A stretch of DNA of 62,748 nucleotides, filler included, from Syncephalis fuscata S228 (lineage: Eukaryota > Fungi > Zoopagomycota): assembly GCA_025786725.1 (NCBI GenBank). It is 4 parts of 4 records of this genome, joined end to end, with 100 filler letters (N's around TTAATTAATTAA, not from the genome) between each part and the next. Parts side by side here need not be neighbours in the genome. Positions count along the whole stretch, not along the records: positions 1 to 22,097 come from JAHLTZ010000145.1; 3 more parts are not named here. One strand, given 5' to 3'. The notes beneath the pieces are model-generated. The model worked only from the letters and a program-made list of their open reading frames with translations, made no database searches and had not been told where the DNA came from. Shown one piece after another: positions 781-21,974 of the stretch. Position 1 is the stretch's first letter, and the number at the start of each line of letters is the position of its first letter. The position numbers and the translations under genes are program-made.

Positions 781-1314
781 TGTTGTAGAATCAATAAATT
801 TAGCTTATATTGTATGGCCTAGTTGTGTAACAGCATGGTGAAAGCCGATATATAAACCTTTACTGTATAAATACCAGATTATTGGTGTTACCAGCTTGTC
901 TGTTTAAATGTTAAACAAATTAAAACAAAGAGCTAGGCTGCATATCATCACGTTATCAGTGTGTTGGTATACGTGTGCCTCAAGTCATCATGTGAATGTA
1001 TCGCTATTGGCTCACACTACATTTCAATGGTATAGTCCATACACTACAGCCTATTGACATTTCAGCATAACCATAGGCTTAAATAGACCACGCAATACAC
1101 ACAGCTAACCATTGCACCACAATTGCACTCTCTTTCTCCAAGTATTCACCACTATCTACTTTATACCAATTATATTCTATTATCTGTTTTATTTGTTTGT
1201 TTCAACAAATCAGAATCAACATAAAGCGTCCTATTGCTGTCGTCTGTACCATCGTCGTGGCTTTTGTGGCCAATATAGCCATGGCAGATGCTAAGCCAAT
1301 GCTAGTTCGTCGTG

Positions 1315-2104
1315 GTAGGTTGCAACTACGATGCTCAATTAATTAGTTACTCAATCAAATACTTTTTGTAATACCAAACTGAATTTGATAGCCTGTAAGT
1401 GATTTTATAAACTCCTTAAACATGCTAAATACATATCGCCCACTATACGTGTTTAGTAACTTATATTGATAGTTTGTAAGTAGCTCCATCTATTAATTAG
1501 TTATATAATAACCATATGCCATTCACCTTTTTGTGATTAATAATTTGTATTAATAAAGAGTAAGCAGCGTTGTATATTAATTTAATTATATACCAACAAT
1601 TTTGCATTTACTTTGCGTGCTCAATAATGTGCATTAATAGAGCGTAAGTAACGTTTTACATTAACTAATTATATACTAAATTTATGCTGTTTACTGTGTG
1701 TACTCAATAATATGTATTAATATTTTGTAAGTGGTGGTTTAGCTTAACTAACTATATGCTAAAATATTTCATGCACCATGTGTGCCAATGATTTGTATTA
1801 ATAGCAGGTAAGTGGCGATGTATAGTAATGGGCTATATATTAATCATGTTTCATGCGCTGTGTTTGTTCAATAGCCTGTATTAATAGGCGGTAAATAAGA
1901 TTGTATATTGATTAACTATCATTAGCTAATCCGATATTTGTACGTTGAATGGTTTTTATTGATAGATGGTAGGTGAGACTGCATATTAAGCTACTATGTT
2001 CTAATCATAAACCATGCATTGTGCGTTTTTAGTAAGATATTTTTATAGAATGTAAGTGGAGCTGTATGGAAATTGGATAAATGTTAATTATATATTATAC
2101 ATAG
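1315..2104 (+). repeat. Degenerate 78-84 bp tandem array (intron plus 3-nt exon unit), continuing at 7531-7720
   Basis: Recurrent TATT(A/G)ATAG-NNN-GTAAGT motif with donors at 1395, 1476, 1560, 1644, 1727, 1808, 1891, 1969 and 2052. The unit split by the transposon restores an 84-nt period when the element is removed. Confidence 0.85.
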
Positions 2105-2319
2105 TGTGGTATCAATCTTGGAAACGATGGTATTTAGGAGCGGAGCTCAAATAATTAATATAAATACTATCCAAGTTCATATAATTAATAAAGAACAGAC
2201 TTTCTTACGACTAATCTTCTTGCTACAAATATAAGTGGAGATATCACAATAATATTCAGTGTTTATTGATAGTTGTCACCTCGCTCTACCGTCCCCCCAA
2301 ATCCTCCACCAATACGACA
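2105..2319 (+). repeat. 5' LTR (215 bp)
   Basis: TGTGGTATC...ATACGACA; no difference from 7311-7525 on manual comparison. Confidence 0.97.
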
Positions 2320-2321
2320 AT

Positions 2322-2338
2322 TGGTGGAGGACCTGGGC
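2322..2338 (+). other. Primer binding site, probably tRNA-Ala
   Basis: TGGTGGAGGACCTGGGC begins 2 nt after the LTR. Its complement ends ...TCCACCA, the U70-C71-C72-A73-CCA end typical of tRNA-Ala. Confidence 0.7.
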
Positions 2339-2465
2339 AACGTAAAACAATCGTTGCCCGTTCGTGCTCTCCCGTACCTAAAGACACTAATATTATTGAA
2401 TACCTTCCACTTGACTCGATCTAATTTTATCTAATAATACCGCTAATATCTCGTCATACATCCAA

Positions 2466-3818
2466 ATGTCTACTAACGAAAGACTAAGGCCATTAACACG
2501 CGCTGCGGCAGCCATCGCCTTACCTATTGATGAACAGGATGAGGTTGATGATCGATCGAATGTATCACAGAACAATCAACCCGAAGTACCAGTTCCAACG
2601 ACCCCGGAACAGGCACCCACATCAGTACCATCCAGTACTGCAACAGTGATCCAATTGATCACAGAAAGTTTTGTCAATACATTGGTACAAAATGCCGGCT
2701 CATTATCGACCACAGACAGTGCGCAAATGGCCATCGCGTTAAACTACACACTGCAAAAGTTAGGCCATAATCAAATTGCTACCTTACCTTCAATTACCCC
2801 TGGCCCTGGGTACACCGTACAAACGCCCGGCACTATTCTGCCGACAGTTGTCCCAACCCATGAAGTCACATCCTCTGCGCCCATAGCGGAATTCAACAAT
2901 CTAACGGATACTCCCAGTCGTATTCCCAAATCGACTACCTTCGAATCGATAGCTGACAGTGAATCCACTGATAGCGTATCAGTAATACTACAAAACGATA
3001 CTCCGCCGGTGAAAAAAATTACACCAGCAGCAAAATTACCCAAGATGGATATCGAAAGGTTAGACGATAAGGACGACCCGTTAGAATGGTTAAACAGCTT
3101 TCAGATGATCGCTGGACTAGCGAAATGGGATGAGCCAACAAAATGCGGTCGCTTATTTTACGGATTACGTGGCCGTGAGAGTGTTTGGTGCCTTCAAAAC
3201 ACTCCGCGACTAGATGATTATCGTCCTGGACTATTCACACAGTTAGTAAGGGAATTGAAGACGAAATGGTGTTTAGGCGATCCCGAAGAAATGTTAATGA
3301 CCAAATTCCATCTGACTCGTTTACGTCCCAATGAGACCCTCCTCGCTTTCGCTGAGCGAGTAGAGAAGGCCGGTAGTAGCGCTGGTGCTGATACCGACGC
3401 CATTTGGTACCAGATTAAATTGGGTACGAATGAATACGTCCGCGATAAACTACGGAACTACCAGATCCAAACATTGGATGATTTGCGATTCAGAGGAAAA
3501 AGTATACCAACAATTGACCCAAATAAGAAACAAATCAACCGATCGGATATCCATGCTGTTCTTAACGATGATTCAACCTTCTCTGACGAGCTAGTGTCTA
3601 GTTCAGTTCAGATGGTCTCTAATTTGAGTCAGCAACGTTGCCGCCCCAATAACAACAACGGACGGAAAAGCAAACAACAACAATCTGTTCCTCGTTATCC
3701 CTGCGCTATCTGCGATGTTCAAGGACACTTTACACACCAATGTCCAAAATTACCCGCTGCCCGAGCCTCTGCATTAGGTGGACTACCTAATGTAGACGCT
3801 AACGAATCGGAAAACTAA
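2466..3818 (+). CDS. gag: Retrotransposon Gag with CCHC zinc knuckle
   Basis: 450-aa ORF with a capsid-like region (DDPLEWLNSFQMIAGLAKW) and CAICDVQGHFTHQC. Confidence 0.93.
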   Translation: MSTNERLRPLTRAAAAIALPIDEQDEVDDRSNVSQNNQPEVPVPTTPEQAPTSVPSSTATVIQLITESFVNTLVQNAGSLSTTDSAQMAIALNYTLQKLGHNQIATLPSITPGPGYTVQTPGTILPTVVPTHEVTSSAPIAEFNNLTDTPSRIPKSTTFESIADSESTDSVSVILQNDTPPVKKITPAAKLPKMDIERLDDKDDPLEWLNSFQMIAGLAKWDEPTKCGRLFYGLRGRESVWCLQNTPRLDDYRPGLFTQLVRELKTKWCLGDPEEMLMTKFHLTRLRPNETLLAFAERVEKAGSSAGADTDAIWYQIKLGTNEYVRDKLRNYQIQTLDDLRFRGKSIPTIDPNKKQINRSDIHAVLNDDSTFSDELVSSSVQMVSNLSQQRCRPNNNNGRKSKQQQSVPRYPCAICDVQGHFTHQCPKLPAARASALGGLPNVDANESEN

Positions 3819-6800
3819 GTGGGGTGTCGACGTTTAAGGGTACCGACACCCCCGACCAATTAACAAATCCCTTGAAAACCGTATCCGTAGTCAATGCCAT
3901 TTCCGCAACGACATTACTACAGGATGGTACTATCAATGGACACGTAGTCTCTATGCTGATCGATACAGGTGCTGAAAGTACAGTTATTTCTAGTGCGGTT
4001 TGCACTAAAATAGGACTCATTTTGGGCCCACGTACCGATTCATTTGTACGATTAGCTGATGGCCGTCACGTTAACACTCGTGGACGCACTCCAGTGCGGA
4101 TTGAAATCGCTAACGTGGTACGGCAAGTCGATGCAGTTATACTAGACGCTGCCCCGTATAGCGTTCTACTTGGTATGGATTGGTTATCAGCCGCTGGTGC
4201 CAGCATTGATTGCGCAGCGGGCCGATTGTTCATTGATGGCCAATCCCATGATATAAAATTATCAAATAATCCCTCTCCTGGTATACATGTCGTATCCATG
4301 GTAGAGAAAGTCAGAAATAGTCGTTTACTTAGTAAGATTAAACAACACTTACTGAGACGGGGTGAACGACCCACTAAGAAGATTAATGATGCCGTGTTAG
4401 CATTGGCACTATCCCAATCGTCTAGTGAAGAATGGAATGAGTATACGCGTACAGCAAAACTCAATCAAGTGCTACAGGAATATTCAGATCTCTTTGCGGC
4501 GAATCCGAATAATCCTAATGCCACTACTAGAGTTCGCCACACAATCGATACAGGTGACTCACAACCAATTAATACACCCCCCTATCGTTCGGCTTATCGA
4601 CAGAGAGAAAAGATAACTGAAGCAATTGCTGACATGCTCAAGAATGGTATTATTGAACCATCTCGTAGTCCATGGTCTTCTCCTGTGGTACTAGTCGGTA
4701 AGAAGGATGGTGGTGAAAGATTTTGTGTAGATTATCGCAAAATCAACTCTATAACCAAGAAGGACTCATATCCAACTACTCGGATCGATGATGCCCTTGA
4801 CATGCTGACTGGCGCCTGTTGGTTTACTACTTTAGACCTTGCGTCAGGATATTGGCAAGTTAAGATGGCCGAGTCCGACAAAGAAAAGACAGCGTTTGTC
4901 ACTCACGCTGGTCTATATCAATTTAGTGTCATGCCATTCGGTTTATGCAATGCACCTGCGACTTTTCAACGATTGATGGATGAAGTATTGGCGGGATTGA
5001 AGTGGCATTCGTGTATTGTTTACCTAGATGACATTATCGTGTTTGGTAGAACGTTTGAAGAACACCTACAACGACTGAGTGCTGTATTTAAACGACTACG
5101 TGACGCTGGACTTCGTCTGAAGCGTAGTAAATGTCATTTCGGACAACAACAACTTGCTTATCTCGGTCATGTAGTTAGCGCTACTGGCGTTAAGCCCGAT
5201 CCAGATAAAGTGTCTGCAGTGCACAATTTCCCTGTTCCCACTGACGTCCGGGGATGTAAAAGCTTTCTAGGCTTAGCATCTTATTATCGCCGCTTTATTA
5301 ATCGATTCGCTGAAAGAGCCGAACCCATTCGTCGCCTAGAGAAGAAAGGTACACCTTTTGTATGGTCAAACGAACAACAAATCGCTTTTGATGATCTACG
5401 AACTGCTTTAACTAGTAATGACGTACTAGCTTACCCAACTCTATCTGAACCATTCCGAATTGAAACTGACGCATCTACTTACGGCCTTGGCGCTGTATTA
5501 TCACAACAAATCAATGATGTATGGCGGCCAATTGCATATGCTAGTAGAGCGTTGAATGATGCTCAAAAGAATTATTCAGCAACTGAATGTGAATGTATGG
5601 CTATCGTTTGGGCCATTGAAAAGTTTAGACCCTATGTTTATGGTAGCAACTTTACTGTAGTTACAGATCATTCTGCTTTGCGTTGGCTCATGTCTCGACC
5701 TAATCCAACCGGTAAACTTGGGCGATGGGCGTTAAAACTACAAGAGTACCGACCAACCATTGAATACCGACGTGGTACTGCAAATGCTAATGCTGATGCA
5801 TTATCGCGCGATCCTTTACCGTGGCATGAACTGGTCGAATTAGCAGAGCAAGACAAGGCAACTATGGTGATGCACATAGCCGAAATACCTGTACCCTTGT
5901 TACCCACTAATGAAGAATGGCTATATGCTCAACAAACTGAGGCTGGTACAGCAGATATTTATGCTTACTTGAAATATGGCGCTGAGTCTACGCTGATGAT
6001 GTCCGAACCTACTCGTCGCTCTTTACGTAAACGTGCCAAACGCTTTGGATTGGTAAATGACCGAATGAAAAGGAAAGTTATGAAAAACGGCATTGTGGTA
6101 GATTTACTAGATGTAGTACCCAACCAATATCGACCAGTAGTACTATATCATAGTCATGATCAGGAACTGGCTGGTCATTTGGGTATCACACGTACTCACC
6201 AGCGATTACGTCAAAACTATTGGTGGCAAAATATGCACAGTGACGTATGCGATTATGTAGCATCCTGTACTGTATGTCAGAAAGTGCGACGTATACACCA
6301 ACGATCCGGACTGTTACAGTCATTACCGGTGCCAGAAAAACCGTTCGACTTTATTGCCATTGATCTAATGGGACCTTTTACTGAATCCAATTATGGAAAT
6401 AAGTATGTGGCTGTATGTTGTGATTACACCACTCGATGGATAGAAGCAGCGGCCATTCCAGATGCGACGGCTGAGACGACCGTTCAGTTCCTAATGACTC
6501 ATATTATCGCTAGGCATGGTATGCCAAGAGTATTACTTACTGATGGTGGAACCAATTTCACATCTGGTTTGACTACTGGCATAGCACGTAGACTAGGCAT
6601 ACAACGACGGATCACTTCGGCTAGACGACCTCAAACTGATGGACTTGTAGAAAGATTTAATCATACACTTGCTTCTATGATAGCTAAGTTCACTAGTGAT
6701 TTTGAACAAGATTGGGATAAGTATTTGCCTTTACTACTATTCGCTTACAGAACGACAAGACAATCGTCGGCTGGACACTCACCTTTTCAACTATTGTTTG

Positions 6801-7360
6801 GACGAGAGGCTACCCAACCGTTGGAAGTCGCCGTCGACCCAGCTCCGACAATTCCGATCCGGTTCCATAAAAAGGTAGAAGAATATGAAGAATATGTCAC
6901 CGATCTGCAGTTGAGATTAAACGATGTAAGAGAAAGGGCCAGATTGATGATTGAAGCAGCCCAACGTCGACAATCTGCAAGATATAATAAAGGACGACGA
7001 AAGGAACCGTTTAAAGAAGGAGATTTAGTGTGGGTGGAAGAACAACTGTTAAAAGGAACAAAATTGAAAAAGATGAAAGAACGTATCAAAGGACCGTTTA
7101 AGGTGATTGACCAGACGTCGGCTGTGAATTATCTCCTAAAGGATTTAGAAACGCAAAGAACGTTTTCTGAACATGCCGATCGAATGGTGCCCTTACATAA
7201 CAGGCCCGCACACTTATTATTACCTGCAGTAGCGGTAAACCATTTATCAGTGCCCAACCTAAGTCAAGATGATATGTCAGCGGGACGCTTGACAACCAAA
7301 GAGGGAGTGTTGTGGTATCAATCTTGGAAACGATGGTATTTAGGAGCGGAGCTCAAATAA
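3803..7360 (+). CDS. pol: Retrotransposon Pol (protease, RT, RNase H, integrase)
   Basis: LIDTGA protease, YLDD RT, ETDAS RNase H, HHCC zinc finger, DDE integrase and GPF module; no internal stops; frame open from 3803. Confidence 0.97.
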   Translation, partial: RIGKLSGVSTFKGTDTPDQLTNPLKTVSVVNAISATTLLQDGTINGHVVSMLIDTGAESTVISSAVCTKIGLILGPRTDSFVRLADGRHVNTRGRTPVRIEIANVVRQVDAVILDAAPYSVLLGMDWLSAAGASIDCAAGRLFIDGQSHDIKLSNNPSPGIHVVSMVEKVRNSRLLSKIKQHLLRRGERPTKKINDAVLALALSQSSSEEWNEYTRTAKLNQVLQEYSDLFAANPNNPNATTRVRHTIDTGDSQPINTPPYRSAYRQREKITEAIADMLKNGIIEPSRSPWSSPVVLVGKKDGGERFCVDYRKINSITKKDSYPTTRIDDALDMLTGACWFTTLDLASGYWQVKMAESDKEKTAFVTHAGLYQFSVMPFGLCNAPATFQRLMDEVLAGLKWHSCIVYLDDIIVFGRTFEEHLQRLSAVFKRLRDAGLRLKRSKCHFGQQQLAYLGHVVSATGVKPDPDKVSAVHNFPVPTDVRGCKSFLGLASYYRRFINRFAERAEPIRRLEKKGTPFVWSNEQQIAFDDLRTALTSNDVLAYPTLSEPFRIETDASTYGLGAVLSQQINDVWRPIAYASRALNDAQKNYSATECECMAIVWAIEKFRPYVYGSNFTVVTDHSALRWLMSRPNPTGKLGRWALKLQEYRPTIEYRRGTANANADALSRDPLPWHELVELAEQDKATMVMHIAEIPVPLLPTNEEWLYAQQTEAGTADIYAYLKYGAESTLMMSEPTRRSLRKRAKRFGLVNDRMKRKVMKNGIVVDLLDVVPNQYRPVVLYHSHDQELAGHLGITRTHQRLRQNYWWQNMHSDVCDYVASCTVCQKVRRIHQRSGLLQSLPVPEKPFDFIAIDLMGPFTESNYGNKYVAVCCDYTTRWIEAAAIPDATAETTVQFLMTHIIARHGMPRVLLTDGGTNFTSGLTTGIARRLGIQRRITSARRPQTDGLVERFNHTLASMIAKFTSDFEQDWDKYLPLLLFAYRTTRQSSAGHSPFQLLFGREATQPLEVAVDPAPTIPIRFHKKVEEYEEYVTDLQLRLNDVRERARLMIEAAQRRQSARYNKGRRKEPFKEGDLVWVEEQLLKGTKLKKMKERIKGPFKVIDQTSAVNYLLKDLETQRTFSEHADRMVPLHNRPAHLLLPAVAVNHLSVPNLSQDDMSAGRLTTKEGVLWYQSWKRWYLGAELK
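3809..3876 (+). promoter_or_regulatory. Putative -1 ribosomal frameshift signal (slippery site plus pseudoknot)
   Basis: G GAA AAC at 3809-3815 just before the gag stop; stem 3821-3829/3844-3852; loop 3833-3840 can pair with 3869-3876; pol is in the -1 frame. Confidence 0.75.
7298..7308 (+). other. Polypurine tract
   Basis: AAAGAGGGAG immediately upstream of the 3' LTR. Confidence 0.75.
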
Positions 7361-7525
7361 TTAATATAAATACTATCCAAGTTCATATAATTAATAAAGA
7401 ACAGACTTTCTTACGACTAATCTTCTTGCTACAAATATAAGTGGAGATATCACAATAATATTCAGTGTTTATTGATAGTTGTCACCTCGCTCTACCGTCC
7501 CCCCAAATCCTCCACCAATACGACA
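7311..7525 (+). repeat. 3' LTR (215 bp)
   Basis: Direct repeat of 2105-2319 followed by the CATAG duplication. Confidence 0.97.
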
Positions 7526-8340
7526 CATAGTATGTAGCTAGTAATTTAATGCTAACAAACAGTAAGTGATATTTCACACCATCTAATTATGTACTAATCA
7601 TATACTGTTACTGAACATTTTAATGGCATTTGCCGATAGATGGTGAGATAAACTGCATAATAGTTAGCTATATACTAATTAAACGAACTTTACTGTATAC
7701 ATCTATACCATGAAATAACTAGCATAATTTAAAACATTAGCATGTATAATCATTAGGTTACCGTTTCCACTACTTTAGATATATATATGGCAAGAAGCAA
7801 AATCATTTGACAAATGCCGTTCAGTCCATTCACATATCAAGCTCCAGCCAATGCTCCGGGTTATTCATATTTCAATCAATGATATTATCATATTACAAAC
7901 AATTTTACAATTAGTCGTGTATATATAGCTATGTAAACTTGTAGTAATAAACATATAGTCATATCTATGCTTATGCTTAATTTGCATCCAATTATTGAGA
8001 AGCACTAGTCAGTAAATATATTAGCATTGTATTTGTACAAATACAATTTATTATGTCGACTTGCGTGATGCAGGGCAATGTTAATGATTAAGAATGCACA
8101 AACCAAAACTATTAAAATCCAAAGTAAGCCACATTAAAATGAAACTAAGGAATTAGAATTTAGCAACAATGTTAATACTCTATCGTTAATATTAACTTTA
8201 AAAACAGCCTTTTTATTAGCAACAGCCTTTCAGTAAATAATAAACATAAGATTAAACATAACATTATCGTAAAGCTTTTAATCTTCATTACTATTTGTTG
8301 ACATGCTTTTGTAAACAATTATAGCATTTCGCTTTTTTAA

Positions 8341-11300
8341 TTACGTTTCATAAGCAAGAATAGGACGAAGCCACTTCTCTACTTCATCTACCGATACCGA
8401 TTTACGCTCGGCATAGTTTTCAATCTAGTTGTAAATGAAATACATTATTAGTTGTCTATACAAACAAGCTTATCGTTTCTACTTACTTGATCCTTTTCAA
8501 TCTTGCCTACTGCAAAGTATCGTGACTCTGAGTTGGCAAAATAAAGGCCGCTAACCGATGCAGCTGGCCACATGGCAAGTGATTCAGTCAGTTGAATATC
8601 CGTTTCTTGTTCGATATTGGCAAGCTTCCACATAACACGTTTCTCTGTGTGGTCTGGCTGACTTGGATAGCCCGGTGCTATATAAGATACCATTATTTGT
8701 TAATTAATCTACCTACTATAATTAAAATGTTATTAAATACCTGGTCGAATGCCCTATTTTTATACAATAAAATACACGTTATTAGCAATAAATTGCATAT
8801 CCATCAATATGTCACTCACCTGATATTTCACCGACAACATGGCTTCAATATCCAAATTTTCATTCTTGTTATAGCCCCAGTATTCCTGTAAATCATTGAT
8901 GGCTGATTAGTATGTTCCATCTACTAACTTAGCAAAATGGCTATCTTATTTACCCGACGCAGTTCAACATGGAGTGCCTCGGCAAATGCTTCGGCCAATC
9001 GATCGGCCAACGCTTTAACCATAATTGAGTTGTAGTCATCAAACTGCTTTTCATAGCTCGCGGCAAGTTCATCGGCTCCAAAACCAGAACTAACGGCAAA
9101 AAGACCAATATAGTCTGCAATACCGCTATCTTTGGGTGCAATAAAGTCGGATATGCACAAATATGGATCTTGAGATTCTTTATCCTATATAGAGATGCAT
9201 TAGCCATTATTTCTATGCTGTATAGCAATGTACTTTTTCCGCTTGTTGTCTAAAATATAGAACAAATAAGTATTTATAAGCAATTAACCCTGTATGCTTA
9301 TCATACCTTAATCCACAGAATTTTGCTGAAACCGTTTGACGTGTCTCATCGGTGTAAACCTGCCATTCAAGTATTTAACAATTTTATACAAAGTGGCAGT
9401 ATTAGATTTATTACCTCGATATCATCACCTACGCTGTTGGCTATACAATATCATTAGATTTAATTATAATATTTAGCAACCCTTACCTGGATATAGACCA
9501 ATAATACCCTTGGCTTTTAATAGCTTTTCATCTATAATACGTCTCAACAGCACTTGTGCCTCGTCGTATAGTTTCTTGGCTTCAGCACCTATTAAATCAC
9601 AATTAGATTGAGCCATGTCTATAATTATTCAACAACCTACCAACATTCTCATCCTTAAATATCTTGGGATAGCCACGATTTGGATAGCGACCTCGTAGTT
9701 GCCACACTTGGAAGAATGGATTCCAGTCGATATATTTAAGCAGTGAATTCAGATCATAATCTTTAAACACCTATAATTGAAATATCAATAGCAATTATAT
9801 GTAATTTGCCATTTATCTACCTTCACACCCAAAAATGATGGCTTAACGGGCGATGATTGTGCTGCCCAGTCGATTTGTAAGCCTTGTTCGCATGCCTTTG
9901 GATATTTTAAATATTTACGATCCTTTAAAGAATCATACTAATCAAAGCAATTACTTGTTACACTCTCCACCATTATTAAAATCAAAAGTGGCTACTTACA
10001 TGATCCTCGCGTACCTCTTCATACTCCTCTCGGATATCCTCAGCAAAGTCTTCCTTTGCTTGTTCATCAAGTAGATTTGAAACAACAACAACACTAGCCA
10101 TTTAACTATTAATAACTGCAATATCGATCGTTTTTACAACGATTACCTTCTAGAAGCATCTAATACATGAATTGCCGGTACAGAGTAACGAGGAGCAATC
10201 TTCACTGCTGTATGTGTTTTACTCGTTGTAGCACCACCAATTAAAAGTGGAATTTTTACACCTCGTCGCTCCATTTCTCGAGCCACGTGGATCATTTCAT
10301 CCAATGAAGGCGTAATTAAACCAGACAAGCCAACAATGTCGGCCTGTTCTGCAATGGCCGTCTCGATAATCTTTTCAGCCGGAGTCATGACACCCAAATC
10401 AATAACCTATAATTAAGGGTTAGTTACGGTATCAATTATATTGATGTATCTATCTATTGAACATACTTTGTAATTATTACAGCCTAGTACAACAGCTACA
10501 ATATTCTTGCCAATATCTGTTTATCATCCATTGTTAATAATACGATTACAAACATACATACACATATATATATATTCAACTATCATACCATGAACATCTC
10601 CCTTGACCGTAGCCAATACTAATAACAATGTTTAATGATATGTTTACATTATCATATTCCACTTACCAATTGTGCCATTGTACATCGATTGACTGGCATC
10701 AGTGTTGGCAGTCAGCTGTTGCTTTAATCGCTCTTCTTCCATAAATGGAATTAGATGAGCAACAGCTCTAATAATTAAATGCTTAGTAATTCTATACTAT
10801 TAATAATTTGATCGTTTAACTTACTGCTTCATAACACGTGCACTTTTAATTACTTGAGGTAGAAACATTTTACCTGCACCAAATAGATCACCAACAATAT
10901 TCATTCCGTCCATCAACGGCCCTTCAATGACATGTAATGGCCTTTCAAACTATCATTGTTGGCATGTATCAGTTTTGTTTATATAATCACTATTGTTTGA
11001 TAATTACCTCTGGCGATACACGGGCTTCTTCCGTATCTTCGATAATATACTTGGTAATACCTTTAACAAGCGCATAGGACAGTCGTTTCCTTACTGGATC
11101 TTTTCGCCATTCTTCTTCGTTCTCCTTCTTCTCACCTACTTTTCCGTGTTGTTCAGCGTATTTAAGTAGTTTCTCTGTTGATTCGGGATCTTTGTTGTGA
11201 ACTGCATTTTCACAAATCTCAAGCAGATCTTTGGGAATATCGTCGTAAATGGTAAGAAATCCTGAATTAACAATGCCCATGTCTAGACCAGCTCGAATTG

Positions 11301-13929
11301 CATGGTACTATCAACGTCTATTAATAGACATGTCTATACTGTTTAATAAACGACTTACCAGAAACACGCTGTGCATTGCCTCTCGTACGACATCCTTACC
11401 ACGGAACGAGAATGAGACATTTGAAACACCACCGCTTACCTAGATCGATTCATTTGTAAACGTGGCTTTAATTCGTATCTATTTATACTTACTTTTGCAC
11501 CAGGGAGCTCTTGTTTAATTCTACGCGTTGCTTCGATGAATTCAACTGCATAGTTATCGTGCTCCTCTAAATAGACCATTAATATATAGACAAAAAGTAT
11601 AGACTAATTACTCACCCATGCCAGTACAGATGGTCAAAATATTTGGATCAAATACAATATCATTCGGATTGAATCCCACGACTTTGGTTAATAAATCATA
11701 CGATCGTTTACAAATCTCAAATTTACGATCCTTTTCTGCTGCTTGGCCTTGTTCATCAAACTAATACAGAACAAGATTTAGAATTGCTAAATAGCATAAT
11801 ACAAATTTACTCACAGCCATAACAATGACTGCAGCACCGTAACGTTTGACAAGACGTGCTTTGTGTAAAAAGTCTTCTTCACCTTCCTTCAAACTAATAC
11901 TATTAACAATGCATCGACCTTGATAACATTTGAGGCCCGCTTCAATAACATCGAAGTTGGACGAATCGATCATTAAAGGAACCTATAATATTGGTTAGCG
12001 ACATCATAGTATCACTAATAGTAATATTGGTGTTTTAATCATTACCTTGGCCACATCCGGTTCAGAAACAATTAAATTAACAAATTTTGCCATGGCCGTC
12101 ATACCGTCCAGCATACCATCATCCAAATTAACATCTTAATTATAACAGTAATATAATTAATATAACATAGATGACAAAATGCCACTAATATACTTACCAA
12201 CAATCTGGGCACCATTCTCCACTTGAAGTCGAGCAATAGCCAGACCTTCGTCGTACTGATTATCTCGAATATGTCGTGCAAACTTACGTGATCCTGAAAC
12301 ATTGCATCTATAGCCATATAGTCAATGTTGCCATCTATCTATGTAGGATTGGTCATATTTACCTTTCGCCTACATTCACAAAGTTGGTACGTTCGTCGAT
12401 TGACAATGGCTCCAGACCCGATAACAACATTTTATTTAATGCTTCATTGGCGGGCGGCACTCGTGGCTTATACGGCAGGCATGCGTCGACAACAGCCTTG
12501 ATATGTTTCGGCGTAGTGCCGCAACAGCCGCCTACAATATTAACAAGGCCACTTTTGGCAAATTCAGCTACCTGTTGTGCCATACTTTCCGGTCTATACT
12601 CATTTAGTGCATGTTTAACCATTAGTATAAAATGTATAGACTGTGCTGCTATTAAATTATTACTTACAATTGGTCATATTCACCAAATGTGTTAGGTAGG
12701 CCGGCATTTGGATAACATACAACATAGGACGAAGTAAAGTTGGCAATATTTTGAATAAACGGTCTCATTTGATCGGCGCCAAGAGCACAGTTAAGACCAA
12801 TGGCTAGTGGACTGGCATGGGAGACACTAATAACAAAAGCTTCTCCTGTTTGGCCAGACAGTGTTCTAATCGTAGATATTGGTTAGTATATACATACATA
12901 TATATATATTAGTATAATCAATCGCTTCTTATTACTAACCGTCCACTTTGATCAACAATAGTACCAGAAATAAAGATAGGAACCCGTTCATAGCCGTCTT
13001 CATCGTCAAAAATCGAATCAATGGCAAAAAGAGCGGCTTTTGCATTAAGTGTATCAAAAATTGTTTCTACAAGCAAAATATCCGCTCCACCATCAAGTAA
13101 TCCACGTGTTTGTTCTTTGTACGCATCAACCAATTCGTCAAATGTAACATTACGATATGCAGGATTTTCGACCGATGGTGAAATAGAAGCCGTACTATAA
13201 TGACTCATTAGCAGTCTATTCGGTCAGTTCAGCTTAGTACGCACCGATTGGTTGGACCTATAGATGGTGTTGATAGGCAGACCATCGTTGTTATGCAACG
13301 GCCAACAATGTATTGCTGTACTTTAACTTACCTATAGCACCGCATACATAACGCGGTTTATCCGGCTGTTCCTTAGTGACCTCCTCACAGGCTTGTCGGG
13401 CCAATTCAGCAGCTACTTTGTTAAGTTCGTAGGCCAAAGGTTCTAGGCCATAATCAGCTTGGGCAATACATGTCGATGAAAAAGTGTTTGTTTCGACAAA
13501 ATCTGCGCCAGCCAATAGGTATTCCTTATGGATATTAACAATGGCATCTGGTTTAGTAAGTACAAGTAAATCGTTATTGCCCTTTAAATCCTTGGGATGA
13601 TCAGTAAAACGTGTGCCTATAATAATAATAATAGTGTAAATTTAATAATGTTAAGTAAATCGACTATATTGAAATCAAAAATTATTCACCTCTAAAGTCG
13701 TCCTCGTTTAAGTTTAGCGTCTGTATCTGCGTGCCCATAGCACCTTTTATCATATTGTGTTATTTTATCATATACTGTTTTTTATGACGGCGGCCAACTT
13801 ACCATCTAGAAACAGTATACGCTCTTTCAACGCCGACGCGATATAGTCTAGATAGTAGCTGGAATTAACATGTAATTCCGCTTAACCATAGCAGTAGCTA
13901 CCTTTCAAAGGAGGTCTTACACTTGACAT
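8341..13929 (-). CDS. metH: Cobalamin-dependent methionine synthase, about 30 introns
   Basis: Exon translations include [65 protein letters not shown] (B12 binding), [20 protein letters not shown] and [16 protein letters not shown] at 13929, TAA at 8341. Confidence 0.96.
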
Positions 13930-15942: not shown

Positions 15943-18266
15943 ATGCCTAGCTCTCGACAAACATTTGCAGTCCCCGGAAGCTTTTTATTCCTTCCACAGG
16001 ATAAGCGTCGCGCGTACAATTCTCATCATGAGCAAGATACCAAGAGACAATTGTTAACAACAACCGCCTTGTTGGCAAAAGGGGCTAGCAATGTTGACGA
16101 TACCCCGAAGCATCATCACATATCGAATGTTCCCCTTGAGCAAAACTATAAACTATTGACCGAGATTGGCAAAGGAGCGTTTGGAAAAGTATACCGCGGT
16201 ATTCATCTTGCTACAAAAGATGAAGTGGCAATCAAGGTTATTGAACATAAAAATCTAAAAACCGCTCGACAACGTCGTAATGTTGAACGGGAAGTACGCA
16301 TTATGAGCTTGCTACACCATCCAAACATTATACCAGTGCGTGAGGTAATTATCGTACCCGGCCGCTACACTGTAGTCATGAACCAAGCACGCGGTGGTGA
16401 ATTATTCGAGCATATTAGCAAGTCTCGCCGCTTAAGCGAGTCCTCTTCACGCCGATACTTTCGACAGATTGTATCTGCGTTACATTATTGCCATGAGGTA
16501 AGTTATTTATGCAAAGAAGAAAAATACAATTTCTTCTAGTAGCACACATGTACTAATACGTGTGATGTACAGCATTCTATTATTCACCGAGATTTAAAAC
16601 CGGAAAATATATTGCTTGATGAGACACGCAAACGTGCTTTTATCATTGATTTTGGTTTTAGCAACACTTATCGTGCAGACGGTGTCATCAACACGTTCTG
16701 CGGTTCTCCATCCTATGCATCGCCCGAAATGCTTCGCGGGGTACCATATATTGGACCTGAAGTAGATATCTGGAGTTTGGGTGTCATTCTCTATGTGATG
16801 CTGACTGGTAATCTGCCTTTTTCTGCAAAAGAAGGTAAACAACTCTGTGCTCAAGTCTCGCTCGGTCAATTCCGCATTCCCGACTATGTCTCGGCGAGTA
16901 AGTTGGCAAGCCGTTACTACCTGCATAGCCATTCAAGCATGCTAACATGTGATATTTAGGTGCAGCGGATTTATTGAGAAGAATGCTTAATGTGGATTCA
17001 TACAAACGCGCTACCATGCAAGAAATCATTAATCATACTTGGACAATGGAAGGCTACTCACATCCCGTAACGCGTATCCATAAAAACCGACCGTGCCTCG
17101 TGACAGATCCTAATGAGGAAAGTATTCAGCAACTTGTATCCTATGGATATAAACGCGAAGATATAATCAAGTATCTACGTGATACACGAATAGTCAGTCA
17201 TCCAATTATAAGTTTATATCATCTTTGTGAAGATGGCCGATTACGCAGAGAGATTGCTGCTCGTCGTACCGAGCTTGAAAAGAAAAAGCTTATTTACCAT
17301 GGCCGCCGTTCCTACTCGTTGGTTGGACAGTCGAATTTCTTCAATACCAGCATCGAAGGAACAGTGCCAATAGAGCAATATGACCCCACATGCCACATGC
17401 CATCACCACTGGCCATCGAGGACTATTTGGCACGTGCAACTGATAAGTCAATTAGTGGTCAATTAGCGGTCAAACGGCAATCGACAGCACCGGCCAAAAT
17501 GCCCCATACTGTAGCTGATACGATAGCCGATATGACTGTTTGCGGGTTATGTCACAATGTTGATGGTGATTGTGACTGTTTTGTCGTCGAATCAACATCA
17601 GACTCGACTCATCCACGGATATCCGAAGAAGATCGTGAACGATTCTACACACCTGAATTACCACCGGCCGATGATAGTGGATGTGCCAGCAGTGCCGGTC
17701 GAGCATCAAATCATAGCGCTCTTTTGGCTCTTGAAAGCATTAAAGACGGCCATTCACTGCCGAATAAAAGTGTTTCACTGATACATGATTACTGTAGAGC
17801 TTCGTCAGGCATGGCATCACCTACCGATGCTACCTTTGGCTCTGAGATTGAATCAGCTCAATATTTGCCACAAAAAGAGTACAGGGCCCGCTTTAGAAAT
17901 ATACTCAATAGAAAGACGGCGGTGACCACGACAACGACGCCGCGGCTTGGCTCATCAGCATCTTCAATCGTTAATGCAAATAGATTGCCTGCCACTGTTC
18001 AAACAAATCCACCATTATACGATTCTCATAAATTTACATGGAAGAAGAATGCCCAACACTCCAATGGTACAAATGTACGGCAATTCATGGGCCAATGCCA
18101 GTTATTAGTCGTTTATCGTAAATTATATCGCAAAATGGCTCGTTGCGTTCGACGTAAACGTAGTTGTAACAGCGCAACTCCTGATTCTTACGTATCAGCT
18201 CCTCCTATTGCACCAATCACATTTCCACATACACACATCACAGCTGCCAAGCGAAAGGCTGTATAA
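15943..18266 (+). CDS. CAMK-group Ser/Thr kinase (KIN1/MARK/SNF1-like) with UBA-like region and disordered tail
   Basis: GKGAFG, VAIK, HRDLKPEN, DFG and TFCGSPSYASPE; introns 16498-16572 and 16898-16959. Confidence 0.92.
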
Positions 18267-18853: not shown

Positions 18854-20535
<1,682 letters not shown>

Positions 20536-20885
20536 TTTTACAGGCATAATGGGCAGGCCTAGTAACACAAATCATGCTACCCTTGTCCACTAGAATCATA
20601 GGATACCCAATCGCCTGGCGTAAATGAATTCTAATGTAGTACAATTTAGTAGAGCATGTTTGTTCACACAATACTATTCTCGCTTCTGTTTCATCATTTT
20701 GTTTCCAATTGATTATTATTGAACATCTGTGTTGCCCATACTATCTTCATTCATACACGCACATATACATATACATATATATAGTGCTACGTTTATCCAT
20801 TTCAAATAAATTATCATAACATCAAATCGCACTCATTACTCGCTATTTATCTATATTGCAACGACTCTATTTAACTGCCTCCATT

Positions 20886-21974
20886 ATGTCTACCGCTAGC
20901 CGATACACTACCTGGCGTCAACGCTACCTTCGCGACGAACCAAGTCTCGGCTCAGGACAGCCGTGCCGATATGTCGCCTACAACACAGATGGCTCCAACG
21001 GTGATGCCATCACTACTAGTGAATCTTCTGGCTATGGTTTGCTAATTTCCGTTCTAAATAATGCTCGCGAAGACTTTGATGCTATTCTGCGTTTTACCGA
21101 CCACTTCATGAATAGCCGTGACCTACTCGGCTGGCAGCAGAGACGTGAACAAGGTTCAGGCCGCATACTTCCCGGTAACAACGGCGGTGAAAACTCGGCT
21201 ACCGATGGCGATCTTGACTGTGTAGCTGCACTATGGATGGCCCACAAACGATGGGGCAACAACCAGTACGCCGACCGTGCACGCAGGTGGGGCAATGCCA
21301 TCCTAAACCACTGTATTAATTCAGATACTGGTGCTATTGTTCTTGGCGACTGGGCCAACTTCAATAAATGGGATGATAAGCGATGGCTTACCCGTCCATC
21401 TGACTATGTTCTCGGTCATTTAACCATGTTTTCACGCAAGCATACCGATCGAAGCGATGCCTGGAACCGTGTCATTAACGCTACCCGTTCCATCATGAAT
21501 AGCCAGTACAAGCTTAATCCAAATACTGGTTTGGTTGCTGATTTCTTGAAATGGGATTCAGGTCGTAACATGTACATGCCAGCGAATGGCTTTGTTCAGG
21601 AATCATCGCACGATGGCGACTTTAACTGGAACGCATGCCGAGTTCCATGGCGTCTAGCCCAGTACTACTTCTATACTAGGGACTCTTCTGTCTTGCCACA
21701 CTTGCAAGCACTTGTCAGATTCTTTGAAGCTAGGTGCAGCAACGGCTACGTACTTGCCGGCTACCAGCTAAACGGTCAAGGATATGTCAACTATACAAAC
21801 TTGGCATTCCTTGCTCCAGCTGCTTACTGCCTCAAAATCATGAACAGCCCGTTGGCCAACACTGTCTTTGGTCAAATGGACCAAGCTTATCCTAGCGCTA
21901 CTTACTACGGTGAAACTATTTCTCTCATTACTCTATTGCAAGCCGAACGAAGCTCGCTTGACTTGATGAACTAA
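20886..21974 (+). CDS. Glycoside hydrolase family 8, chitosanase/lichenase-like, intronless
   Basis: TTSESSGYG (catalytic acid), NSATDGDLD signature, TRPSD, PNTGLVADF and FNWNACRVPWR. Confidence 0.9.
   Translation: MSTASRYTTWRQRYLRDEPSLGSGQPCRYVAYNTDGSNGDAITTSESSGYGLLISVLNNAREDFDAILRFTDHFMNSRDLLGWQQRREQGSGRILPGNNGGENSATDGDLDCVAALWMAHKRWGNNQYADRARRWGNAILNHCINSDTGAIVLGDWANFNKWDDKRWLTRPSDYVLGHLTMFSRKHTDRSDAWNRVINATRSIMNSQYKLNPNTGLVADFLKWDSGRNMYMPANGFVQESSHDGDFNWNACRVPWRLAQYYFYTRDSSVLPHLQALVRFFEARCSNGYVLAGYQLNGQGYVNYTNLAFLAPAAYCLKIMNSPLANTVFGQMDQAYPSATYYGETISLITLLQAERSSLDLMN

Follow-up and report, generated by a model that had tools for sequence, protein, structure and literature searches.

Tandem codon-sized exons have been described in Tuber melanosporum, whose nank genes contain tens of alternatively spliced exons of this kind (Iotti 2012, via PMC4986451, PMC10197012, PMC13449251). 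In schistosomes, 35 micro-exon genes (MEGs) carry 10-20 small exons each, mostly of 6-81 nt and commonly of 15, between introns of 0.1-5 kb, and their isoforms come mainly from alternative splicing (10.1101/2023.06.21.545858). Isolated fungal microexons, as in Coprinopsis cinerea (27 exons of 3 nt in 26 genes; PMC12230235) and Trichoderma Xlr2 (PMC11121469), indicate that spliceosomes handle exons of 1-3 nt. Here, we analysed a stretch of 62,748 nucleotides, filler included, joined from four records of the Syncephalis fuscata S228 genome (GCA_025786725.1) and called the window below, where a first-pass annotation had placed a secreted-peptide gene built from eleven 3-nt micro-exons at positions 1221-7882. 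Syncephalis fuscata is a haustorial parasite of other fungi. The window copy belongs to an S. fuscata family of well over 100 small secreted-peptide loci, haplotigs included, and the genomic sequences of its paralogues make it likely that these are codon-sized micro-exon genes working mainly by full inclusion of their exons and by shuffling of exon units at the DNA level.

The annotation knew of no described fungal equivalent; the nank genes, as portrayed in the sources cited above, are a precedent. Both are expanded fungal families whose genes string together tens of 3-nt exons. However, in those accounts nank genes encode large intracellular NLR-type receptors whose variation is reported as alternative splicing, whereas the S. 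fuscata genes encode small secreted peptides of a zoopagomycete, short and without NACHT or ankyrin domains, in which selection appears to favour full inclusion and gain, loss and exchange of units are visible in the DNA. Unlike nank as it is presented there, the S. fuscata array makes up the whole mature product, its exons are in phase 1 and intronless paralogues exist. The schistosome MEGs share with our family a parasitic owner, secretion, a conserved signal peptide, frame-preserving tiny exons and multigene organisation (10.1101/2023.06.21.545858), but in S. fuscata about 96% of the exons are 3 nt long, the introns, of ~80 nt, all stem from one repeat, a gene holds up to at least 76 exons and the loci exceed 100. 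The leaders have no sequence homology to MEG families, all credible leader matches being from S. fuscata itself. The Coprinopsis and Trichoderma microexons are single exons in ordinary genes, in contrast to arrays encoding a whole peptide. A literature search on microexons with Syncephalis and on secreted peptides of fungi with 3-nt exons in tandem, in which subscription journals were thinly covered, found no paper. We met no earlier description of this family or of a whole secreted peptide spelled by codon-sized exons, which would be a variant form of the codon-sized micro-exon gene.

Family size and gene structure

The 29.36-Mb genome holds 209 candidate first exons and 217 candidate terminal exons, and the strict leader end followed by a GTATGT donor matched 100 times (control: 0), haplotigs pushing such counts up. 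The exact 15-mer TAATAG-NNN-GTAAGT occurs 2,752 times, as compared with five for the reversed control, so the triplet arrays are not a product of chance. At the DNA level, 50 loci were examined and yielded 24 complete genes. Database searches were run with single exons or public proteins, the joined models serving for the statistics. A profile of 23 leader exons gave 21 matches among 1.84 billion proteins, 20 of them N-terminal and all 20 hypothetical proteins of S. fuscata. The public S. fuscata models examined either read into introns or correspond to intronless members, and models P0002-P0004 leave the triplets unused.

Each gene would open with a constant leader exon encoding a signal peptide, a pro-segment and a kexin RR site. 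This exon measures 94 nt (97 in a few copies), ends in phase 1 in all intact copies and encodes 31 residues, namely 24 that resemble a signal peptide and then a short pro-segment with RR at its end. It is followed by 11-49 small exons in the complete paralogues and by at least 76 units in L040 (C2:654000-661000), whose array extends past the examined DNA and whose joined frame is stop-free and resembles an amphipathic helix. Exons of 3 nt account for 629 of 658 (about 96%), the remainder being mostly of 6, 9, 12 or 15 nt. The array introns, ~80 nt long, are all homologous copies of one repeat (tandem units of ~83 nt) and every one sits at the same codon position. When 529 units were anchored without splice signals, the AG (98%) and the G-T/C (99%) were the best conserved positions and the triplet the worst; most non-GT donors are GC, with 13 cases. 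The arrays are tied to signal-peptide exons, with no free satellite, and AG/GT are better conserved than the rest of the unit. The terminal acceptor lies 70-73 nt past the last donor in 22 further genes (80 in the window copy), and a stop occurs at codon 0 or 1 of the terminal exon in 19 of 23 genes. Because this stop follows the acceptor almost at once, the array would spell the entire mature peptide, and not diversify its N-terminus only, as had been supposed. Paralogue leaders and units thus support the view of the triplets as 3-nt phase-1 exons of secreted-peptide genes with a kexin-type RR site.

Throughout the family, CTRAY motifs resembling branch points are concentrated in the array introns 41-60 nt before the acceptor, farther than is usual when fungal introns are short; smaller peaks occur closer to the AG. 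Array introns of L032, L034, L036, L038, L044 and L048 (probably also L046) contain a ~410-bp element resembling a short interspersed nuclear element (SINE), in reverse orientation with its T-rich tail first, with a tRNA B-box-like motif and a target duplication of ~15 nt; Rfam and ARAGORN gave no match for it. Within the repeated intron, these insertions have nearly one position, just a few bases past the donor, which suggests that the element prefers the array intron unit as target.

Selection on the joined reading frame

In phase 1, each codon consists of the last base of one exon and the first two bases of the next, so any avoidance of stops depends on exon order. Neighbour junctions form one stop in 462, as compared with 14.8±3.0 expected when exon order is shuffled within genes, and one in 406 (13.3 expected) after removal of near-copies; a second set, of partial arrays, contains none in 202 (6.5 expected), including the 74 stop-free junctions of L040. 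After an exon ending in T, exons starting with AA, AG or GA are nearly absent and those starting with GC or GT are enriched, hence an excess of Cys at neighbour junctions (45 vs 24.9 expected) and of CxxxC motifs in the joined order (12, vs 1.4 after exon shuffling and 5.1 after residue shuffling). Two other readings were rejected: phase 2, in which stops are not depleted (35 vs 33.7 expected), and phase 0, which is rich in Leu, Ala, Ile and Val and conflicts with the phase of exon 1. Joined exons of the paralogues thus bear the marks of an open frame under selection, a property that the window copy itself lacks. From these signatures it is most likely that the triplets are spliced in order, the ~80-nt introns being removed one by one through intron definition and nearly all triplets being joined.

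The picture differs for junctions that skipping would create. At skip distances 2-8, stops are not depleted (18 vs 14.3 at distance 2; 13 vs 13.7 at distance 3) and Cys codons are not enriched, the enrichment being confined to neighbour junctions. Since both signals occur only between neighbours, selection acts on the fully joined peptide. One skip carries a stop risk of 3-4%, and the computed share of molecules gaining a stop is 5% at 5% skipping and 15% at 20% skipping. Low-level skipping may occur, but disulfide spacing would be lost if it were random, and the first-pass idea of 2^n inclusion patterns as a design finds no support in the junctions.

Intronless paralogues

Contiguous coding sequence stands behind the same leader in P0005, P0010, P0008, P0001 and P0014, and P0009 is likewise encoded without interruption for its first 93 mature residues. 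Among the joined models, L038 matches intronless P0014 with an alignment z of 8.0, and L042 and L043 match intronless P0005 with z of 5.1 and 3.9; P0001 begins with AVxPLAKR, which in L044 and L050 is distributed across four exons. That joined products match intronless paralogues supports translation of the triplets. At C361:476109, the terminal-exon match directly adjoins a contiguous coding match. In a leader tree of 31 columns, where contiguity was checked for six of the 17 rows labelled intronless, these genes are interspersed among micro-exon genes with nine label changes, and none of 200 bootstrap trees had just one such change. Their closest leaders fall in different micro-exon groups (P0001 is 94% identical to L045, P0005 90% to L042). 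We lean towards repeated retrocopying as their origin, some products of the micro-exon genes ending up as intronless, probably processed, copies. P0016 and P0020 are fusions of the family leader with a single-domain von Willebrand factor type C (SVWC) domain, which is unusual for a fungus.

Variation at the DNA level

Genes whose leaders are nearly identical differ by whole units or blocks. Two missing units and two units with dead splice sites distinguish L007 and L006; several whole units differ between L036 and L043. The first 14 exons are common to L014 and L018, which then diverge. The leaders of L042 and L043 are identical and their arrays can scarcely be aligned, and L044, L045 and L050 have both ends in common and differ in the middle. 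Within genes, duplicated exon-plus-intron blocks run in series. In unit pairs whose introns are ~1% different, triplet positions 1, 2 and 3 differ by 13%, 6.5% and 14%, position 2 being the wobble base. The triplets thus differ about ten times faster than their near-identical flanking introns, a contrast biased by the choice of nearest neighbours; this fits diversifying selection or homogenisation of the introns.

It is likely that the variation arises in the DNA by gain and loss of whole units and by exchange of blocks. As all introns are copies of one unit, exchange at one-codon resolution would be possible: the repeated intron could offer a handle for crossover wherever two codons adjoin, and unequal crossover or conversion between homologous units would add, delete or exchange blocks within and between genes, although it is the differences that are observed and the recombination that we infer from them. 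We give roughly even odds to a broader proposal, namely that the family is a genomic peptide-library generator, in which a recombination handle at every codon lets one-codon insertions, deletions and block swaps give rise, behind a fixed secretion leader, to peptides unrelated in length and fold, some of them fixed as intronless copies, and that codon-sized arrays may be widespread and unannotated across fungi.

Alternative explanations

It seems very improbable that the arrays are a non-coding minisatellite, or an intron-borne repeat spread inside one intron of a leader gene, with triplets that are no exons. The units are indeed homologous ~83-nt tandem repeats, and public models P0002-P0004 make no use of the triplets. 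Yet in these units the splice dinucleotides are conserved best and the triplet least, stops are avoided in a manner specific to frame and exon order, the GC donors and the exceptional exons of 6, 9, 12 and 15 nt obey splicing rules, and the joined products match intronless paralogues. If the triplets are exons, their main purpose might be combinatorial skipping with many isoforms per gene, as in Tuber nank and schistosome MEGs. All exons preserve the frame, codon-sized exons are described as alternatively spliced in Tuber in the sources at hand (PMC4986451, PMC13449251), weak GC and GTATGT donors are present, and the low risk per skip would leave only weak selection against skip-junction stops. 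We nevertheless regard this as quite unlikely, given that skip junctions are not depleted of stops, that Cys codons and CxxxC spacing, which skipping would break, stand out only in the fully joined order, and that the intronless paralogues have full scaffolds.

The history could also be reversed, with intronless genes ancestral, the intron unit gained codon by codon in the manner of introners and the arrays tolerated as clutter, splicing being the same as in our proposal. The introns all belong to one repeat family, as introners do, the leader tree is compatible with one origin, and the most divergent members, P0016-P0021 (two with the SVWC domain), are candidates for being intronless. Against this stand the closest leaders of the contiguity-checked intronless genes, which lie in different micro-exon groups, the duplicated exon-plus-intron blocks within genes, the constant codon position of every intron, and the ~10-fold faster change of triplets than of flanking introns, replacement exceeding wobble, a contrast subject to the nearest-neighbour bias; such a history is in our view unlikely. 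Full inclusion combined with unit shuffling in DNA thus remains the reading that we prefer, and the following points weigh against it. Splicing and expression are predicted from genomic sequence, which also leaves room for a minisatellite. About one-third of the 24 complete models show exons of 1-2 nt, splice sites that are dead or stops that come early, and these may be pseudogenes or reflect long-read indel errors. The leader tree is weakly resolved and compatible with a single intronless origin. Finally, neither the P0014 model nor the Cys-rich members have a significant match in PDB, Pfam or Atlas.

If full inclusion and unit shuffling hold, the family would be an extreme case of splicing, with up to at least 76 consecutive 3-nt exons joined in order, and intron definition and the handling of tiny exons could be tested in one gene. 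New peptides could then emerge through recombination driven by the repeated introns instead of by repeats in the coding sequence, codons being reshuffled without coding homology.

The window copy

The features of the gene in the window are the following.

1221..1314, + strand: exon 1, encoding the signal peptide and a pro-segment with the LVRR codons at its end; one further base (phase 1); ATA in place of the ATG of paralogues
1315, + strand: donor of exon 1, GTAGGT, read in the window sequence
1392..1394, + strand: 3-nt exon 1, CCT; TAG/GTAAGT
1473..1475, + strand: 3-nt exon 2, TTT; TAG/GTAAGT; its last base and the following triplet form a stop
1557..1559, + strand: 3-nt unit 3, AGA; AA at the acceptor position
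1641..1643, + strand: 3-nt exon 4, AGC; TAG/GTAAGT
1724..1726, + strand: 3-nt unit 5, TTT; AT at the acceptor position
1805..1807, + strand: 3-nt exon 6, CAG; TAG/GTAAGT
1888..1890, + strand: 3-nt exon 7, GCG; TAG/GTAAAT
1966..1968, + strand: 3-nt exon 8, ATG; TAG/GTAGGT
2049..2051, + strand: 3-nt exon 9, AAT; TAG/GTAAGT
2105..7525, + strand: Ty3/gypsy long terminal repeat (LTR) retrotransposon within intron 10; paired LTRs, target duplication, open reading frames (ORFs)
7559..7561, + strand: 3-nt unit 10, ACA; AA at the acceptor position
7640..7642, + strand: 3-nt exon 11, ATG; TAG/GTGAGA
7723..7951, + strand: terminal exon with two coding bases, TAA at 7725-7727 and a family-conserved 3' untranslated region (3'UTR); AATAAA at 7946, 3' end putative

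The leader exon ending in LVRR with its GTAGGT donor and all eleven triplets lie where they had been annotated, separated by introns of 75-81 nt, and eight units do have TAG-NNN-GT intact, the other three (1557, 1724 and 7559) having AA or AT in place of AG. The exon at 7779, by contrast, had been taken for the last one, a reading ruled out by the family-wide acceptor 70-73 nt after the last donor and the immediate stop: the window acceptor is the TAG ending at 7722 (AG at 7721-7722), 80 nt past the last donor, so that 7779-7882 falls in the 3'UTR and the whole IYMARSKII...YFNQ reading lies behind the stop at 7725-7727.

Triplet 9 is separated from triplet 10 by 5.4 kb, which a recent Ty3/gypsy insertion accounts for; its 215-bp LTRs (2105-2319 and 7311-7525) are identical and flanked by the target duplication CATAG (2100-2104 and 7526-7530). 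It has a gag-like ORF at 2466-3818 and a pol ORF at 3824-7360, in the order protease, reverse transcriptase, RNaseH and integrase. Retrotransposons are active in the S. fuscata genome. Given an ATA start, three acceptors that lack AG, a junction stop soon after the leader and this insertion, the window copy is, judging from its sequence, a pseudogene; a search for an in-frame ATG upstream of its leader found none. It would have been dead before the insertion, because the element-free allele on contig C90, 99% identical, has the same ATA at the start position and the same three dead acceptors.

Products and likely role

The joined products range from Cys-rich to Pro/Ser/Thr-rich and helical peptides. 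Mature P0014 is modelled as a two-helix hairpin with a predicted local distance difference test (pLDDT) score of 82, and some products are predicted to be disulfide-stapled helical hairpins. Hairpins of this sort, the alpha-hairpinin type, carry CxxxC...CxxxC, a Cys spacing that recurs in some family members, and the two-helix model of P0014 is alike; but there is no significant structural or Pfam match and many members are without Cys. Assignment of the Cys-rich members to any described Pfam family or fold was rejected. Given secretion, kexin sites, family expansion, rapid change and an obligate mycoparasite lifestyle, the peptides most likely act as effectors or antimicrobials on the fungal host or on competitors. 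Such a candidate family would have stayed hidden because gene finders and read aligners miss genes of this kind.

Arrays in other organisms

Scanning metagenomes for runs of three 3-nt units yielded at least 120 contigs (L051-L170) from other organisms, and the architecture of codon-sized exons has on that account probably been overlooked in many fungi. Among the matches listed, the arrays have spliceosomal signals and up to 75 units per locus; in the pooled set, stops are depleted in phase 0 (18 vs 77), with no such avoidance in phase 1 (160 vs 175), a pattern unlike that of S. fuscata. In the same set, the arrays of L064, L102, L121, L149 and L170 adjoin NACHT/ankyrin NLR-like frames, as in Tuber. 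L053, L108, L069, L145 and L159 are pure tandem repeats of one triplet, in which exons are doubtful. Others of the listed contigs, such as L052 and L125, are very AT-rich (15-25% GC) and also contain arrays of 3-nt exons. The array of L052 is followed by an exon for a protein kinase, and this kinase is presumably similar to those that have expanded in arbuscular mycorrhizal fungi.

Other genes in the window

Downstream of the micro-exon gene, the minus strand at ~8430-13810 carries an intron-rich gene that we take to encode a cobalamin-dependent methionine synthase (MetH). On the plus strand, ORF translation points to what are presumably an AMPK/MARK-like kinase at 15943-18266 and a homoserine O-acetyltransferase-like gene at 19009-20219. 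An intronless glycosyl hydrolase family 8 gene lies at 20856-21974, also on the plus strand; this family is commoner in bacteria, and its product could act on chitosan of the host wall.

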